Assembly: GCA_020536535.1 (NCBI GenBank)
Contig: JAHLWZ010000954.1
Location: 1-38,858 of the forward strand
Origin: Pelomyxa schiedti
Lineage: Eukaryota > Protista > Evosea
Direction: 5' to 3'
DNA length: 38,858 bases
Shown one piece after another: positions 2,218 to 31,804 of this stretch. The number at the start of each line of letters is the position of its first letter. Positions within the stretch are counted from its first letter, which is position 1. The notes beneath the pieces were generated by a model. That model did no database searches. It had not been told where the DNA came from and saw only the letters and a program-made list of their open reading frames with translations. Position numbers and translations under genes: made by a program.

Positions 2218-3877
2218 TCACTCAGAACCATTAACAGAGGGTACTGTGGTATTGTACTCTTCACTGGTATCAGAGTCAGAATCTGATTCAGAACTTGACT
2301 CCTGGAGAACAACTGTGGAGTTAGAACCGTTCTGTGTTTGTGGGGAATTTTGGACAGTGTGAACCAATTCTGTGGGGTGTTCTGTGCTTTCTGGCTGCTC
2401 TGATTGTGATGTGTTGTTTTGTTCAAGAGTGGGCGCTGGAATCCAGAGGTTTCCCTCTGTGTTGAGCACAGCTTTGGCTTGCTTGTTCTTCTTGGCCTTC
2501 CTGCCCTTCTTTGGCTTCTTTTCTTTTTTGCCTATTTTGCGCTTCACCAGTAGGTCTGCAATGTATTGTGGCTCTTGCCCAAGTAATATGCACAAGTCCA
2601 AATATGTTACATTTGGGTATTTGGGAACTTTTGTGGAAGTTGGTGATTTTCTTTCACACAAACAAGGTAGAGAAATGGATGAAGCCCATTCAAGCAAGCA
2701 GGGGTCTTCCTTGTAATTTATCAATACCAGGGCACTTGGAACGATGTTATCTTCGTAAAACGATCTCAGAAGCCGAAAAACTTCGGCAGAAACCCGTCGG
2801 ACACATCCTAGTTGACGCTTGCAGCGAGAAACCTAGTTACTTGTGAGTAGTAACTTGAGCCGAATACTGTGAACAACCTGTAACCACTGTTCCGCGTACT
2901 TGAAAGTTTGTTGGGTGGCCTCACTGATGTGCTGCATAAATATTTTGCAGTTGACAGAAGTTGTGGGCTGGGAAGTTACGGTACTAATGCTACTGAATAA
3001 TGCACTTTGTACAGCAAGTAAATGACCCAAATTGGCCTCAATGGAGTGACCAAAAAGGTTATTGACCAGGCTCACGTCACTATAGTCACACCAAAGTACA
3101 AGAGGTGCGCTCTGTATTCGAGGTGGGTGTGCCGGCTTTGTGACTGCAGATAGAGGGAATGAAACTGGTACTTGTACTTGTGGTGGATGTGCCAGTTCCA
3201 CCTGGTGATATCTTGGTAGAGACTGCAGTGTTTCTGTGCTGCAGCCTGAAGATGAAGCAGCGCTAGTCTCTAAATTCAACGCTGAAACTGTTGCCTGTGT
3301 AATTCGATTCGAGAAAGGTAAATATATACTGGTGTCCAATGGGCTTGATAACACTGATGATGGTGGTGTAACTGGCAGACCAGGGGGAGGAGGGTTCAAG
3401 TTCACCACAAACCTCTGTGGGGTACTTTCTGCTTTGGGTGGTTTTTTTTGTTTTGGAGGTTTTGATTTTGTTAGAGTCACTGCTGCAACTGGGGATGACA
3501 ATGAGGTCGTCGATGACGTAATTTGCTCTGGTTGCTCCTGAAGCATTTGTTTTTGTTGGCATTTCTTCGGTTGTGGTGGGTCCTCAGGAGGGAGTGCAAT
3601 TGTGCACTTCTTGTCACCCAGGTGGATTGGAGAGCTGGCGATCGCCCTTTGCGCTGATTCTTGTTCTTCAAACACCACATAGGCGCGGTGTGGCTTCATT
3701 TTGATGGGTCTTTTCTCCAGTAGGGGTCCGAACTGCTGCATGGCACCCCGCAACATCTCTTCGGTGATTTTGAGACCGATGTTCCCCACCACCACAGCCT
3801 GGCAACAGAGATCATAAACTGTTGGGGATGGAAAAAAGAAAACAGCACACCCGCGGCCCAGGCTTGACCTTTGGCAT
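2218..3877 (-). CDS. RRM-containing protein with Pro/Ser-rich linker and Lys-rich C-terminal region (3' end uncertain, may extend to ~2000)
   Basis: ATG at 3877 (MPKVKPGPR), a GT..AG intron, then an RRM (AVVVGNIG...AYVVFEEQESAQRAI). The TAG at 2833-2835 lies inside a 33-nt GT-AG intron (2840-2808) that joins ORFs 2833-3924 and 2218-2724 in frame. Confidence 0.7.
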
Positions 3878-25600: not shown

Positions 25601-27730
25601 GGAGGAGGTGGTCAGGATCTTTCACTGGCAGCTTTCATTTTATTTTCGTTTAAAAAAATAGATACAATAGGAATATTTTTACCATTAGACACTTCAGTGT
25701 ATTGGATAATAGTGCACCTAAGAGTGGGAACTCATCTCTAGAAATGTGCTGCACAATGAAAGGGGCAAATACTTCACATATGATAGTGATACTGTCTGGG
25801 TCCTTGTAATGACTTGAGTACAATTTCTTGGGAAGGCATCATTTATTTACTTTGGAAAGGGAAGCATTCAACAGTAATGCTACCATTTTAACATGTGTAC
25901 GCTCCACAAGGGGAAGCTTGCGCTGGAGAGTGTCAGCAAGTAGATGAAGATTATCTGAATTTGTTATTTATAGGTGTTGAATACAATTACCATACCAGAT
26001 TGGATCAAATTGGCTAGTTCAATCCATGATTTCTCAGATATCCAGCAAGACATTTTTGTTGATAGGTACCACATCAACATGGAGCCAACTGCCTTTACAT
26101 CACTAAAAGCAGTGACAGATCCAGATCCCTCTTGTTAGGCTTAGCTTGTCAGGATGAGGAAAAGAAAATGTACGTTTTTCAAGTGCCTCTCTAAGCTCTG
26201 TCACTTCTCTATTGTACCTCTCATTGAATATAAGTATGGATGCCAGTGTCACTGGTGCATCAGCTGGAACATAACTTAGGTATGACAGTTAAGGTCTGCA
26301 AGGCATACCAGAGTTCAGCCAGTGTATCAGAGAAGTCATAGAATACATAAAAAGGCGAGGGATATCAACAAGAAAAACCAGGTTTTGTTGATTCACTGCC
26401 TACAATAAGGTCAAACCATTTTGTAGCAGTGGGGTAATGTACAGTACTCGACCCAGATTTGATGTCTTTTTCAAAAAAAATAGAACGAATAGTCTTCTAG
26501 AAGAAGTGTGAAAAAAGTAAACCATAGCAGTAAGTCAACCATTTTTTTTGATGATGATGACTTGGTTGGACGAGATGCAGCGTACTTTTTTGGATCAAAA
26601 GTGCTGTCTTCAATTGTGTGACCAGTGGGTGTCATAATGAGCTCTTTCTTGGAGGATGTTGGGAGATCAAAATGCAAACAACGAAATTGGAACCTTTGGT
26701 AAGTCTATCACCAGCATCTTGGGGTTAAGAAACATTTGAGGACTATCCACTGGAGCTAATTCAAAATCTTCAGGACGATAAGAAGTCCTTTTCCTCATTT
26801 AGTATAATTGCATGTATAAGTATCACCACTCAAAGGCCCTTATCACTCACTCACACACCACCAGACAGATAGGCACACACACAGACACACACACCACTGG
26901 CTGTGCTTGGCCTGTGCGCTTCGCAGTACCATTCCAGCCACCTCCCTCACAGTGGTAACACTGGGTGTGGGGCACACAACAGCCTGCACCACCTCGTATG
27001 TCTTTGTAAGCGCACTGCCGCTGTTGGAATATCCAACGGCCTCCGTCCCACTGGCGCTCGTGGCCGCCCTCTCCCTCTGCCTCAGTGCTGCAAGTGCATA
27101 GGCGACCCTGATCACCACGGAGCCTCCCATAATCGGGGTCTTGCTGTTGTAGACGCCACCACTGCCGCTTCCCCCGCCGCCCACATTGACACTGACACTT
27201 GCACTGAGGCCTCTGATACTTGTTGGTGTTTGTGCTGCTGTTGAGCCGGTGCCCACACCCTCCAACGCAGTTATGGGAACGTGGACCGCCCCACTGGTGC
27301 TGTGGCTGTGGCTGTGGCCGTGCCCGTGCCCGTGGGCGTGGCCGCTGCGGACGCCGTCGCCCGTGGTCGCAGCGGGCGGCGTCGCGGGCAGCGGCGGGGT
27401 CCTGGAGCCCGAGTGGGCCGGGAGCGACGAGGAATACGCGGGGAGGGGCGGCGACGGCGCGGCGGGAGCCGTGGGGGGAGGGGAGCGGGACGACGGAGGC
27501 GAAGAGAGGGCCGGCGGCCGGGGAGCCGCAAAAGACGGCCTGGAAGGGAGCGACGACGAGTACGAGAAGCCCGTAGGAGCCGGAGGGAGAGGAGGAGGAG
27601 GAGACCCAAATGACGATGTGCTGTTCCCGCTGTTGTTGCCTGTGATGCTGGCCGTGTCGTTTGCGGAAGGGATGGGCAATGCGGAGGAAGAAAGGGACGA
27701 CGCCATGTTTTGGCCCTGTTGAAGCAGCAT
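16662..27730 (-). CDS. Roco-family protein kinase, Pats1-like: Ser/Pro-rich - RhoGAP-like - GRAM/myotubularin - LRR - Roc - COR - TKL kinase - WD40 - Pro-rich tail
   Basis: GRAM/MTM: LLPNEQIL, WCTNYRL, ICSTYP, FRTLSG, RFGTF. Multiple LRRs (LDLSGNNL, LNISGNAF). Roc P-loop GSSSVGKT. Kinase: GEG|SAAVVY, VAVK, HRDLKSPNIL, VADFG. WD-like repeats, then ORF 16662-17738. The link to the 5' ORF 26843-27730 is inferred from splice sites. Confidence 0.82.
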
Positions 27731-27902: not shown

Positions 27903-29387
27903 ATGGCAAACATAGAGGCAGCGCTGGCGGCACAAAGAAACAGGTTCGTGGGTTGTATTTGTACAAGGGTATTTCGGGTCAAGTTCCCTCACTGTTGAAT
28001 GATTTTAACTTTCTTACGTCGGAATCGAATCGGGTATTGGGAGCGACACTATTGACATCTGAATCAGGTTGAAGAAAGCATCCACTGTCGAGAAGAAGGC
28101 CGATTTGGTCTCCCAGGCCGAATCCCTCGTCCAATTCGAAACAATACGAGCAAAAGTCACAGAGTGTGATATTGAAAACTGGTTCTCTTCTCCATTTCTT
28201 TCCTTTTCTTCTGCTCTTACATCTGTGTAGGTATGAGCCACTGAGAGAATGGACCTATCCAACGGTTTTCGACCCAATCTCCATTGAAGAAGGAAAAGCA
28301 ATGGTCCGTCACTTTGAGCACAAACCTGTGCCTACCGATTCCGCCCTCATTGCTCAAATGACTTCACGTCTGCAAGGTGTAATCAACTCTCTGCCTGCAA
28401 GGAGTGCCTTCATAAAGCTTTCTTCTAGGTAAGCTTACTTCCAAAGATATATTGTTTCTCAGGTTCCAATTTGACTTTTAACACAACAAAAGATGTGCAA
28501 AGGATGCTGCTACAGCTTCCTCTAGGACAGAGGAACTGCTGCGGGAATTTCTTGCACCCCATAGGACTTCCAGTTCAATTTCAATGAACACTATCCTTCA
28601 GGTACGATCCCGTGAAGGATCTTTGGTTTTCTCATTAGCACATACTCAAGGGTCTTATGACTGCTCACATTGAAGCACTTAAAGTAAGTGATGCTTCAGT
28701 TTGTGTCCGGATGATGCTTGAAAGTGAGAGAATATACAACGACCTTGTCACTGCCTTGGAGCATCCTGAAAAATGGAAGCAAAATTTCGTATTACGGGAT
28801 TGGGTTCCTATTCCCATCGGACTTGAAATTCGAGGCTTCGTTATGAACAATAGGTTGTCCTTGCTACCAAATTGGTGCTTTTCTAATTTCCGTTCAAGTC
28901 TGACCGCTCTGAGTCAATACTACCATTACTGCTACTGGCCAATTCTAGCTGAAAATAAGCTTCGGGTTCTCAACATGGTGCGAAACTTCTTTGAGACTGT
29001 CAAGAATGTTGTTCCAGTAGCTGATAAATGGTACGTCCTTTCTCCATTAGACCCATTATTCACTCGCACAGTTATGTAATAGATTTTGCGGTTGACCTCG
29101 AACATGACAAAGTGATGATTGTGGAACTGAACCCCTTTGGTGAATTCATTGGAATGGGCACATCCACTGCCCTTTTCAATATAAAAGAGGAGCATGGTAT
29201 GAACAACCTCCAAAACACAATCACACACCAATCACAAAACAACAATACAATAGACCGCGAAATTCTGTTTGGGAGGGCACCATTTGAGTACAGGATTGAA
29301 GAGGCACCGCGGTCTGATGACCAAATATGGTCCCTTATGGGCTCAAACTTCTGTGCCATAGTGAAAAAGGAAAACCTTCGTAGGTAG
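27903..29387 (+). CDS. Cdc123/D123-like (R2K clade) ATP-grasp protein with an N-terminal WH2/actobindin-like motif
   Basis: Spliced motifs: DIENW|YEPL, AFIKLSSR, SERIYNDL, LEIRGFV, LTALSQY, YVIDFA, IVELNPF...TSTALF. Exon 1 (27903-27943) joins exon 2 (28068-) to give MANIEAALAAQRNRLKKASTVEKK. Confidence 0.82.
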
Positions 29388-29449: not shown

Positions 29450-31804
29450 TTAAGAACTGTTGAGCAAAAGGCATAAGGGGCAGTGACTAGAATAAATAAT
29501 AAGGAACAGAGGAAGAAGGGAAAAAGGAGCAATACTCTGAACCAAGAACCGCGGCTCGGCGCCAAACAATCTCCACATTTGGCATGAAGCCCTTGCTTAC
29601 AATGAAGTAATCAAGCCTCCTTTATCCACAGTTAGAAAAAAATAAGTTCGTTGTTGGAAGTACACACCAACCAACATCCTTCTCTCTGGATTTTGAGGTA
29701 TACGTCCAAAACGTGTAGAACTTCGTTGATTTAGTAAAATACAGAATGGGTGGTAGTTTGGTACTTTTCTTTTCTTTGGGAAGAAGTGTCGATAAGAATC
29801 AACAAATCCCGCATCGAGAATCTTCGTGAAACTGTCACGTTCTGGGTAGGTAAAGCCAGCAGATTTGTTGCTCTGTGATGAATTAATTTCCTCGTTACTT
29901 GGCTGGAAATTTGCTCACGTTGCTTTTTGGGTTTGCAATGTCGATCCACAGATGTGCCACCTGCAATGTATGGGAATTCTGTGGGAAAAAAAAAGGGAAA
30001 AAAGCCATACATTGAGATCACCACACCACACTACAGGTTTAGTTGCCTCTAACTTTTTAAGGTATGCAAGAAAGTCTATATCCCACTGCATACGGGACTC
30101 GAGACTGTTTTTTGTTACTTCAAGAAATAAGCACTTTCACATACTTGACTAACCCACGTGATGCATTGGGAACGTAAGTACAGACCATGAAAAAGTTGTT
30201 GAATTCTGCTGTGATGAGCCTGCCTTGGCTGTCATGATCGGGAATTCCCATTCCACATGTAACCTTCACTGGTGCTACCTTTGAGAAGATGCTTGGAGAT
30301 GTAAAAACGAGGCCATTACACAATTAAAGCATACGCAGTTCCAGAGTACCCAGCTTTGTCCTCACAGGTGCAGAAAAATTTATGGGGTAAAGAAGGGATT
30401 GCTATTGCTTTCCCTGGTTTCTCTGCAATCTTTGTCTCCTGAAGGCAAATGATGTCGGGATCTTCTTTGGTAATGTAATCTGCAAATCCTTTCTGAACAA
30501 ACTTTTTAGATCCAACAAGAAGCATAACATTGCACACCTTGCAGACAGCGCTGTAGCCAGCAACGTTCCAAGAAACGATTTTTAGTTGCCCTCTGCACAA
30601 AAGCAAAAATTAGGAGCAGTTCAATAAGTGGCAAAGAGTTTACGGCTTTTTAGCAGGGAATCCAAAGTCGGTGTTTTCTCTGTCACTTGGTGAAGCCACA
30701 TCACCACTTTCCCAGTACTTATCAGAATCAGCAGCTCGTGAAGGGTCCACCCACGCACGGCCAGGAGGGTGGTCTGGGTGACCAGCGGCAGCCTCGGCAG
30801 CAACAGAAACAGCAGAGGATGGAGAGGTTTCTTCATCTGGAGCAGCAGCGGAACTGCTGGAAGTGGAAGTAGTAGCTGTTGTAGTTGGGGCGCCGCTATC
30901 TGCTGGCTTTTCTGCTGCCTCCTCGGCTGCGGAATCCGGCTTGGCATCGGCGCTTGACTTCTTTGACCTGGAGCTCCTCGTCCTTGGGCATTCTGATGAC
31001 TTCTTGGATCCCTTCTTCTTCGATGATGATGATGATGATTTCCCCTTTGACGACGACGACGACTTCTTCTTGCCCTTGGCCTTGGCCTTGCCCTTTCCCC
31101 TGCTCTTTGACGACGACGACGACTTGGACTTGGAGCCCCTCTTCCTCCTGGCGCCGCGGCCGTCGCCGTGGTCGCTAAAGTCCTCGTCGTCCTCGTCGTC
31201 TTCCTCCTCCTCGTCGTCGTCCTCGTCCTCGTCGTCCTCATCGTCGTCCTCGTCCTCCTGCTCCTCCTCCTTGTCCTTGTCCTCCCCGCCAGATTCCGTG
31301 GCGCCCGAGGCCCTCTTCCTGGTGCTGGACCTGGTCCTCGTGCTGGGGCTCCCGCTCGAGGCGGAGGCGCTGGCGCTGGCGCTCGCGGTCTCGCTGCCTA
31401 CTTTGCTGGACGATCTTCGGGTGCGGCCCTTGGGGGCTGCTGGGGACTCGGGCGTGCCCTCCTTTGGTGATGCTGCCGCGGATGGCTCCTCCTTCTTGGC
31501 GGGCTTCGACTCTGCTGCCGCTGTTGTTGGCGGTGGGACGTCGACTGGCTTGGGGAGGGGGGCTGCTGCGTCTTTGGTGTCGACTTTGGACTTCTTGGCG
31601 TTGGGCTCTACGGGTTTAGCTTCAACATTTTCACTCGCGGTCGTGGTCTTGGGCGCTTCGCTCTGTTGCGTGTCGTTTCGTTTATTTTTGTATTATACAT
31701 TAAGAGTGGAGGTGCACGAGACAATGGTGGCGCAGACGTGAATTGTGATACTAAGAGTAAAAAAAAAAAAACAACGATGATACCTGTGGTGCGGTGTCGG
31801 CCAT
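29450..31804 (-). CDS. APE1: AP endonuclease 1 / exonuclease III family, with a long charged disordered N-terminus
   Basis: After splicing: [47 protein letters not shown]|VAH, SAGFT..ER, DSYRH, YTFWTY, GW|RLDYFIVS and SD|HCP, ending at TAA 29452-29450. First exon MADTAPQ starts at 31804. Confidence 0.93.
31170..31285 (-). repeat. GAC/GAG trinucleotide tract encoding the poly-Asp/Glu run of the APE1 N-terminus
   Basis: Plus strand reads (tcg/tcc)n, which is acidic codons on the minus strand. Confidence 0.9.

Follow-up and report, generated by a model that had tools for sequence, protein, structure and literature searches.

A WH2-like N-terminus on a divergent Cdc123-family ATP-grasp protein of Pelomyxa schiedti suggests a candidate actin-directed enzyme

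We analyzed a stretch of 38,858 nucleotides from the protist Pelomyxa schiedti (GenBank assembly GCA_020536535.1, contig JAHLWZ010000954.1, positions 1 to 38,858 of the forward strand; hereafter the window) and studied the gene at positions 27903–29387 on its forward strand. Reading of the DNA and checking of the splice strings revealed an intron-rich eukaryotic gene of eight exons, encoding the deposited protein KAH3743923.1 (351 amino acids; hereafter P0001), which carries the GenBank name "cell division cycle protein 123-like [Pelomyxa schiedti]." The body of the protein resembles Cdc123-type ATP-grasp enzymes, and its first residues occupy the position at which a large branch of its relatives very probably carries a true actin-binding WH2 motif, as judged from sequence comparisons.

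All seven introns have GT..AG ends (Table 1). Exon 1 starts from the first usable ATG past the start of the divergent upstream gene and contributes 13 codons (MANIEAALAAQRN) before an AG|GTTCGT donor; intron 1 ends in ...AATCAG, the split codon AG+G gives Arg14, and exon 2 reads LKKASTVEKKADLV... from there. The frame of exon 2 is closed on its 5' side by a TGA at 28060–28062 and the exon contains no ATG, so that an upstream exon is required. Alternative first exons with ATGs at 27705, 27766, and 27999 were rejected for giving short closed frames or the wrong phase. An exhaustive HMMER search with the exon 5–6 piece retrieved P0001, in which each of the eight in-frame exon pieces occurs without a mismatch, and the six split codons yield its residues. 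The original prediction, made by a model from the letters alone, had spliced 27943 to 28068, and the resulting N-terminus is identical to that of the deposited protein; as the exon pieces map exactly, this splice is the depositors' model as well. A different first exon, which would have spoken against that prediction, was not found, the deposited model having the same exon 1. All whole-protein analyses were run on the deposited record.

Transcript evidence came from a single run (Logan contigs of a single-cell transcriptome), in which a 596-nt contig covers 28652–29390 and skips exactly introns 5, 6, and 7. The gene is expressed and spliced. Confirmation in RNA had been proposed for intron 1; the contig provides it for the last three introns, while the case for intron 1, which lies beyond its coverage, is built on the GT..AG ends, the frame closed 5' of exon 2, the deposited model, and the relatives having no intron there. 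At intron 4, the acceptor at 28638, adding the residues HILK, was dropped for the one at 28650, following the deposited model and a P. schiedti paralog (KAH3746147.1; hereafter P0004) without those four residues, and 28650 is most likely the true end. The two in-frame AG acceptors are 12 nt apart, and the RNA contig, beginning at 28652, is silent on the choice.

The body of the protein had been assigned to the Cdc123-like R2K ATP-grasp proteins, and profile and structure comparisons agree with the assignment. P0001 scores 58.2 bits (cut-off 24) against the Pfam model D123 (PF07065) over residues 175–305, covering only profile positions 122–254 of 300, and shows weaker matches to two other Pfam models of the R2K clade; in scans of single exons, the D123 matches are below the threshold but colinear. 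The similarity to human CDC123 (31.9 bits over 94 residues) and to Schizosaccharomyces pombe Cdc123 (E 0.04) is confined to residues 193–292. Using an AlphaFold model based on 66 relatives (pLDDT [predicted local distance difference test] 93.7, predicted template modeling score [pTM] 0.87), a Foldseek search of the PDB returned Cdc123 structures for all top ten matches (4zgp, 4zgq, and 8phd among the best) at E 4e-13 to 2e-11 and 16–20% identity, followed by D-Ala-D-Ala ligase (Ddl), RimK, LysX, and tubulin tyrosine ligase (TTL) at E of about 1e-2. In the family alignment of the 66 relatives, R118, K121, S179, R181, R203, E213, R215, Q228, Y229, and D270 are invariant, and D122, E284, and N286 are conserved in at least 90%. 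The conserved residues make up the phosphate-binding loop and the acidic-x-Asn Mg strand and align with the motifs of human CDC123, in which A109 and R111 line the ATP pocket (PMC12860950). Longer relatives contain no extra domains besides D123/R2K. Judging from sequence and model, P0001 is a divergent Cdc123-family (R2K.1) ATP-grasp protein that looks catalytically intact, and it is not a classical eIF2 assembly factor.

To place the N-terminus in its family, we took the best 150 matches and retained the 65 that are full-length and have at least 30 residues before the D/N-[IL]-E-x-W anchor. The first 20 residues of the relatives are often WH2-like; the fungus Mycena, for example, has MSLLESIRAGRALRNV...NDASAP, and Anaeramoeba has MLSQIKKVQLKKQVVIDDRSAP. 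Proteins of Anaeramoeba (KAJ5078860.1) and Auricularia (EJD54196.1) are among the strong members. A WH2-type pattern is found in the N-terminal extension of 41 of the 65 relatives, while 4.6 ± 2.0 (maximum 11) were expected from 500 shuffles, giving a nine-fold enrichment; elsewhere in the relatives, the pattern matches 18 times in 20,098 residues. The consensus of 48 aligned N-termini is L..V.LKK.....D.S.P. In outline, the motif at the head of these proteins consists of a short amphipathic helix and L-K/R-K-T/V, often followed by D-x-S-A-P. Some relatives (P0068, P0102, and P0130) have a poly-proline run directly before the WH2-like motif, and the order of a proline-rich region and a WH2 is familiar from the WASP-family actin regulators.

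We searched 177,635 distinct PDB sequences (E up to 10) with two profiles, one built from the 48 N-termini chosen partly by the motif (A1) and another from all 64 N-extensions without selection (A2). The former matched only the chains 2d1k_C of MIM (4.4e-5), 2a41_C of WIP (8.8e-5), and 3m3n_W of N-WASP, a tandem WH2 (7e-3), and the latter matched the same three and no others. The entries 2A41, 2D1K, and 3M3N are actin co-crystals with WH2 peptides. Although the D-x-S-A-P segment played no part in the selection pattern, the relatives conserve it, and it aligns with NDRSAP in WIP and MIM. After removal of the two Pelomyxa proteins from the profile, no region elsewhere in 97 relatives reached 5 bits. 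Hidden Markov model (HMM) scores of the training members are circular; independent evidence comes from the shuffles and from searching the PDB.

The N-terminus of P0001, described in the original prediction as a WH2-like helix followed by LKK, appears to be the positional homologue of the family's WH2, drifted to a minimal helix-plus-LKK form. It has the WH2 layout of a short amphipathic helix followed by L-[KR]-[KR]-[TVA] in an extended segment, spaced as in the relatives P0058 and P0114, and its hydrophobic spacing matches that of the Cymbomonas and Auricularia members. The AlphaFold model predicts a helix at residues 2–10 (pLDDT about 75) and coil at 11–29 before the domain, with I4 and L8 in the helix and L15-K-K-A in the coil. 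The distance from the leucine of LKK to the anchor tryptophan is 37 residues, close to the family median of 38 (interquartile range 37–42.5). When the Pelomyxa copies are left out of the family profile, P0001 scores 6.7 bits, a value reached by 4 of 1,000 shuffles, and P0004 scores 12.3 bits. A profile of the sub-clade of P0001 (17 sequences) gave six matches in the PDB, among them N-WASP (a weak match at E 0.011), MIM, thymosin beta-9, and a thymosin beta-4/Cobl chimera.

Two relatives support the joining of exons 1 and 2. The paralog P0004, 40% identical to P0001 (alignment A3) and sharing the position and phase of introns 2 and 3, encodes MDAALGQVRLKKTTT contiguously. The closest relative found is on an environmental contig (L002) and is 54–64% identical over the catalytic part. 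There, the open reading frame MLANADINAALHKLHKAQL* is overlapped in another frame by STTVDKTK...ECDIEQW, and MLANADINAALHKLHKA adjoins STTVDK without an intron, both halves of the motif being conserved. The two relatives thus retain the helix, L[KH]K, and [ST]T. Farther upstream, the environmental contig has another candidate for the first exon (ATG at 3316, followed by GTACGT).

Table 1. Exons and introns of the gene encoding P0001, in positions of the window
Feature	Position	Strand	Description
Exon 1	27903..27943	+	Met1-Asn13 and two bases of Arg14; predicted amphipathic helix of the WH2-like motif, residues 2-10 (27906-27932)
Intron 1	27944..28067	+	124 nt, GT..AG; divides the WH2-like motif between helix and LKK
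Exon 2	28068..28181	+	Third base of Arg14; LKKASTVEKK at 28069-28098 (LKK core); linker; helix 30-46; DIENW anchor opening the pre-ATP-grasp domain
Intron 2	28182..28230	+	49 nt, within the Trp52 codon (TG|G); same position and phase in paralog L001
Exon 3	28231..28428	+	Pre-ATP-grasp domain to FIKLSS and two bases of Arg118; paralog L001 has an intron at the same place
Intron 3	28429..28492	+	64 nt
Exon 4	28493..28601	+	R118-C-A-K121-D122 (basic phosphate-binding residues, R2K clade) through Q154; aligns with KLNWSAPRDA of human CDC123
Intron 4	28602..28650	+	49 nt, deposited model
Exon 5	28651..28853	+	SERI motif (S179, R181), R203, and E213-I-R215-GFV of the ATP-grasp core; RNA from 28652
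Intron 5	28854..28898	+	45 nt, in frame, no stop; absent from the RNA contig (X1 record 1)
Exon 6	28899..29030	+	LTALSQYY (Q228, Y229), then helix
Intron 6	29031..29071	+	41 nt; spliced out in the RNA contig
Exon 7	29072..29196	+	YVID270FAVD; IVE284-L-N286-PFG (Mg/ATP-binding E-x-N strand)
Intron 7	29197..29253	+	57 nt, in frame, A/C-rich; missing from the RNA contig
Exon 8	29254..29387	+	C-terminal segment (FEYRIEE...), TAG stop at 29385-29387

Three single bases of the window read differently in the DNA-like runs of this sample, namely 27965 A>C (intron 1), 28414 A>C (exon 3), and 29221 T>C (intron 7); they are possibly allelic variants or variants from single-cell amplification. Upstream of the gene, a divergent open reading frame at 26843–27730 on the reverse strand encodes 295 amino acids rich in Pro, Ser, and Ala, with a His-Gly/His-Ser repeat and no Pfam match. 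The two genes probably share a bidirectional promoter region, as their ATGs are only 172 nt apart. The downstream neighbor at 29915–30606, also on the reverse strand, is an intron-containing Exo_endo_phos (AP-endonuclease-like) gene, whose open reading frame at 30319–30606 matches Pfam PF03372 with 26.6 bits.

Members bearing the WH2 were found in Pelomyxa, Dracoamoeba, two species of Anaeramoeba, and the basidiomycetes Mycena and Auricularia, as well as in the choanoflagellate Diaphanoeca, the green alga Cymbomonas, the foraminifer Nonionella, the diplonemid Lacrimia, and the centrohelid Pterocystis; among the 30 matches with the source looked up, none was from an animal or a land plant. Members with a short N-terminus and without WH2 include those of some amoebae (Pyxidicula and Flabellula) and of metagenome-assembled genomes of Asgard archaea, assigned to Promethearchaeota, Heimdallarchaeota (158-kb contig), Helarchaeota (844-kb contig), and Thorarchaeota. 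The Asgard proteins begin about 14 residues before the tryptophan of the anchor, and two of them are 36% (P0070) and 30% (P0135) identical to P0001 in alignment A3. A genome scan with a narrow pattern found only two Asgard loci, L004 1501–2382 and L005 2–721 (Helarchaeota and Thorarchaeota), and viral contigs scanned with the pattern used gave no relatives. The phylogenetic tree, in which the WH2 labels were assigned by HMM, has low resolution, 27 of its 63 branches being open; it places WH2-bearing members in both major groups and implies 13 inferred state changes. The tree is consistent with an early fusion of the WH2 followed by repeated decay. The Cdc123 family has been considered to be of bacterial origin (Burroughs, Zhang and Aravind 2015; PMC4431377).

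Taking the whole chain of evidence together, we lean slightly toward P0001 being a WH2-headed, Cdc123-like ATP-grasp protein that acts at actin. In such an enzyme, the WH2 would dock on a G-actin monomer. Solved structures of WH2 with actin show the helix seated in the cleft of the barbed face and the LKK extending up the front of the monomer; given this geometry, a tether of about 12 residues (18–29) would hold the catalytic body, with its ATP-grasp active site, against the upper half of the bound G-actin. The enzyme would then use ATP to act on actin or on an actin-bound protein, and the usual ATP-grasp chemistry would convert a carboxylate to an acyl-phosphate and join it to the amine of an amino acid, a peptide, or a lysine. 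In the Pelomyxa copy, the WH2 would be reduced to the helix plus LKKASTVEKK, which may have left it with little or no affinity for actin; judging from the sequence, we consider the chances of this copy still binding actin to be even. That actin itself is covalently modified we regard as possible but doubtful. We are also tentative about the broader proposal that the WH2-headed Cdc123-like proteins are actin-directed ATP-grasp ligases, adding an amino-acid or peptide tag or making an isopeptide link as the actin counterpart of TTL and the TTL-like (TTLL) enzymes, and consider it somewhat unlikely.

Several observations weigh against an action at actin. P0001 is the weakest of the family's WH2-position N-termini, its best domain reaching approximately 3–4 bits. 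Scoring with WH2 and thymosin HMMs had been proposed as a check, and residues 1–45 of P0001 matched neither Pfam WH2 (PF02205) nor, at E up to 10, Pfam Thymosin (PF01290); searched alone against the PDB, the N-terminus gave noise-level matches and no WH2. The part of the check that turned out positive was at the level of the family, with its N-terminal profiles matching WH2 chains in the PDB. Even there, the Pfam WH2 model (cut-off 23.1) gave approximately 12 bits and E of about 0.15 in only two of the nine relatives' N-termini tested (P0047 and P0108). In the RNA data, there is no depth before 28652, leaving the intron that divides the motif outside the coverage. In the environmental relative, the helix-LHK part (stop at 3569–3571) and the STTVDK part, within 3512–3666, are offset by 1 nt in an A-rich stretch, which could be an assembly indel in the A-run or a sign of a damaged gene. 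The motif of P0001 thus appears weak when taken alone, while the comparison with its relatives argues that it is clearly nonrandom in the family context. As for the chemistry, we know of no Cdc123-family protein that has shown ligase activity. Classical Cdc123 has been described as an ATPase and an assembly factor (PMC12860950, PMC8844851).

Two other explanations accept the homology of the N-terminus and differ in what they make of it. The motif may be a relic, the ancestral WH2 having decayed in P0001 and its nearest kin, which would not bind actin and would act on another substrate. The low scores of P0001 and its lack of the D-x-S-A-P extension fit such a loss, and the near relatives P0004 and P0005 are weak too (8–12 bits). 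We nevertheless consider a relic unlikely, since P0001 retains the helix, the LKK, and the exact spacing to the domain, and its sub-clade profile still ranks WH2 and thymosin chains first; moreover, the WAVE/WASP/thymosin-type WH2 of 3m3n_W is also without DRSAP and has LKKTETQEK where P0001 has LKKASTVEK. Alternatively, the enzyme may not be a ligase but an ATP-dependent assembly factor or ATPase, to which the WH2 brings actin as a client, cofactor, or sensor with no covalent modification, for example in a G-actin-gated activity or in monomer sequestration. That classical Cdc123 binds ATP, promotes eIF2 assembly, and is described as an ATPase (PMC12860950, PMC8844851) speaks for this, as does the ranking of the structures, with Cdc123 the closest and true ligases matching only at E of about 1e-2. 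The full ATP-grasp catalytic constellation is conserved, however, and we hold a nonligase role to be improbable as well.

The remaining explanations deny either the motif or the divergence of the body. A lysine-rich low-complexity segment or a targeting signal could resemble a WH2 by chance, and the shortness of the motif, the missing Pfam match of P0001, and the noise returned by its N-terminus alone would fit such a coincidence. A coincidence is highly improbable given that, among all the PDB sequences searched, the family profiles match only WH2 peptides of the actin entries, that the pattern is enriched over shuffles with no comparable region elsewhere in the relatives, and that the conserved D-x-S-A-P lay outside the selection pattern. 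The original prediction itself had named the case that would undo it, namely the protein being the organism's sole, ordinary Cdc123, acting on eIF2-gamma, with an N-terminus not conserved. The GenBank name and the shared fold would suit an ordinary Cdc123, but the matches to the human and S. pombe proteins are weak and confined to one segment, the Pfam D123 match is partial, and the N-terminus is conserved in relatives. Furthermore, a KLNWSAP-type motif is present in none of the N-termini and aligned motifs inspected among the 150 closest cluster representatives, and the genome has at least one further paralog, P0004, whereas classical Cdc123 is single-copy (PMC4431377). We consider this the least credible of the explanations. 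A word-based protein search returned four proteins only, with no classical Cdc123 among them.

In the literature searched, we found no paper linking WH2 with Cdc123, and co-mentions of WH2 and ATP-grasp were unrelated. The public names seen for these proteins are only "cell division cycle protein 123," "hypothetical protein," and raw transcript identifiers. Within that literature, the WH2–Cdc123 architecture appears undescribed, both of its parts being individually well known. For Cdc123-type ATP-grasp proteins the fold predicts a ligase, while to our knowledge no substrate or product is known; a WH2 heading a large Cdc123-like branch would be the first contextual evidence that names a partner, actin. 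Should actin prove to be the substrate, the reaction would add a new class to the post-translational modifications of actin, made by a type of enzyme so far known for tubulin. The breadth of the family across eukaryotic supergroups and its WH2-less Asgard relatives also bear on the entry of Cdc123-type enzymes into eukaryotes.

Among known systems, classical Cdc123 (PDB 4ZGN, 4ZGP, and 8PHD; PF07065) shares with P0001 the atypical ATP-grasp fold, the phosphate loop K-L-x-x-x-x-x-[RK]-D, the motif E-x-R-x-F-V, and the Mg strand D/E-x-N-P-F. P0001 differs from it by its low identity, by a Pfam match limited to the C-terminal half, and by being multi-copy. The WH2-type N-extension of approximately 30 residues has no counterpart seen in classical Cdc123, the S. 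pombe protein having about 25 residues before the anchor in the alignment.

The definition of the R2K clade goes back to Burroughs, Zhang and Aravind (2015; PMC4431377), who described fast-evolving, multi-copy amoeboid paralogs of Cdc123 (R2K.1), shared with Legionella and giant viruses, which they speculated to modify the actin cytoskeleton; the text and supplement of their paper make no mention of WH2. Auricularia and Entamoeba are in the species list of that paper. Unlike those paralogs, the WH2-bearing set extends beyond amoeboid organisms to fungi, a choanoflagellate, a green alga, and a diplonemid.

The WH2 motifs of WIP, MIM/MTSS1, and N-WASP resemble the family in having a helix, L-K-K-T/V, and N-D-R-S-A-P, and the peptides of WIP and MIM line up with the family profile residue by residue, the spacing from helix to LKK being one residue shorter in the family. 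The LKKASTVEK of P0001 resembles both the LKKTETQEK of 3m3n_W and the LKHAET of actobindin, the likeness to thymosin and actobindin being at the level of a hexapeptide only (LKKAST beside LKKTET and LKHAET). The original prediction had named this actobindin motif, and a review (PMC10515290) bears it out, giving LKHAET as an actin-binding motif with reference to Vancompernolle 1991. In known WH2 proteins the motif serves in nucleation, scaffolding, or sequestering modules, whereas in this family it is joined to an enzyme.

The proposed chemistry has a precedent in the actin cross-linking domain (ACD) of Vibrio MARTX and VgrG1, which performs an ATP-dependent carboxylate–amine ligation on actin (E270–K50 isopeptide), though it is a bacterial toxin with an unrelated, glutamine-synthetase-like fold and no WH2. 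TTL and the TTLL glutamylases and glycylases, for their part, use an ATP-grasp core to attach amino acids to a cytoskeletal protein. P0001 is not a member of that family, with TTL structures matching at E of about 2e-2 and TM scores of 0.25–0.28, and the analogy is a functional one: a targeting element combined with an ATP-grasp core, for which the substrate here would be actin.

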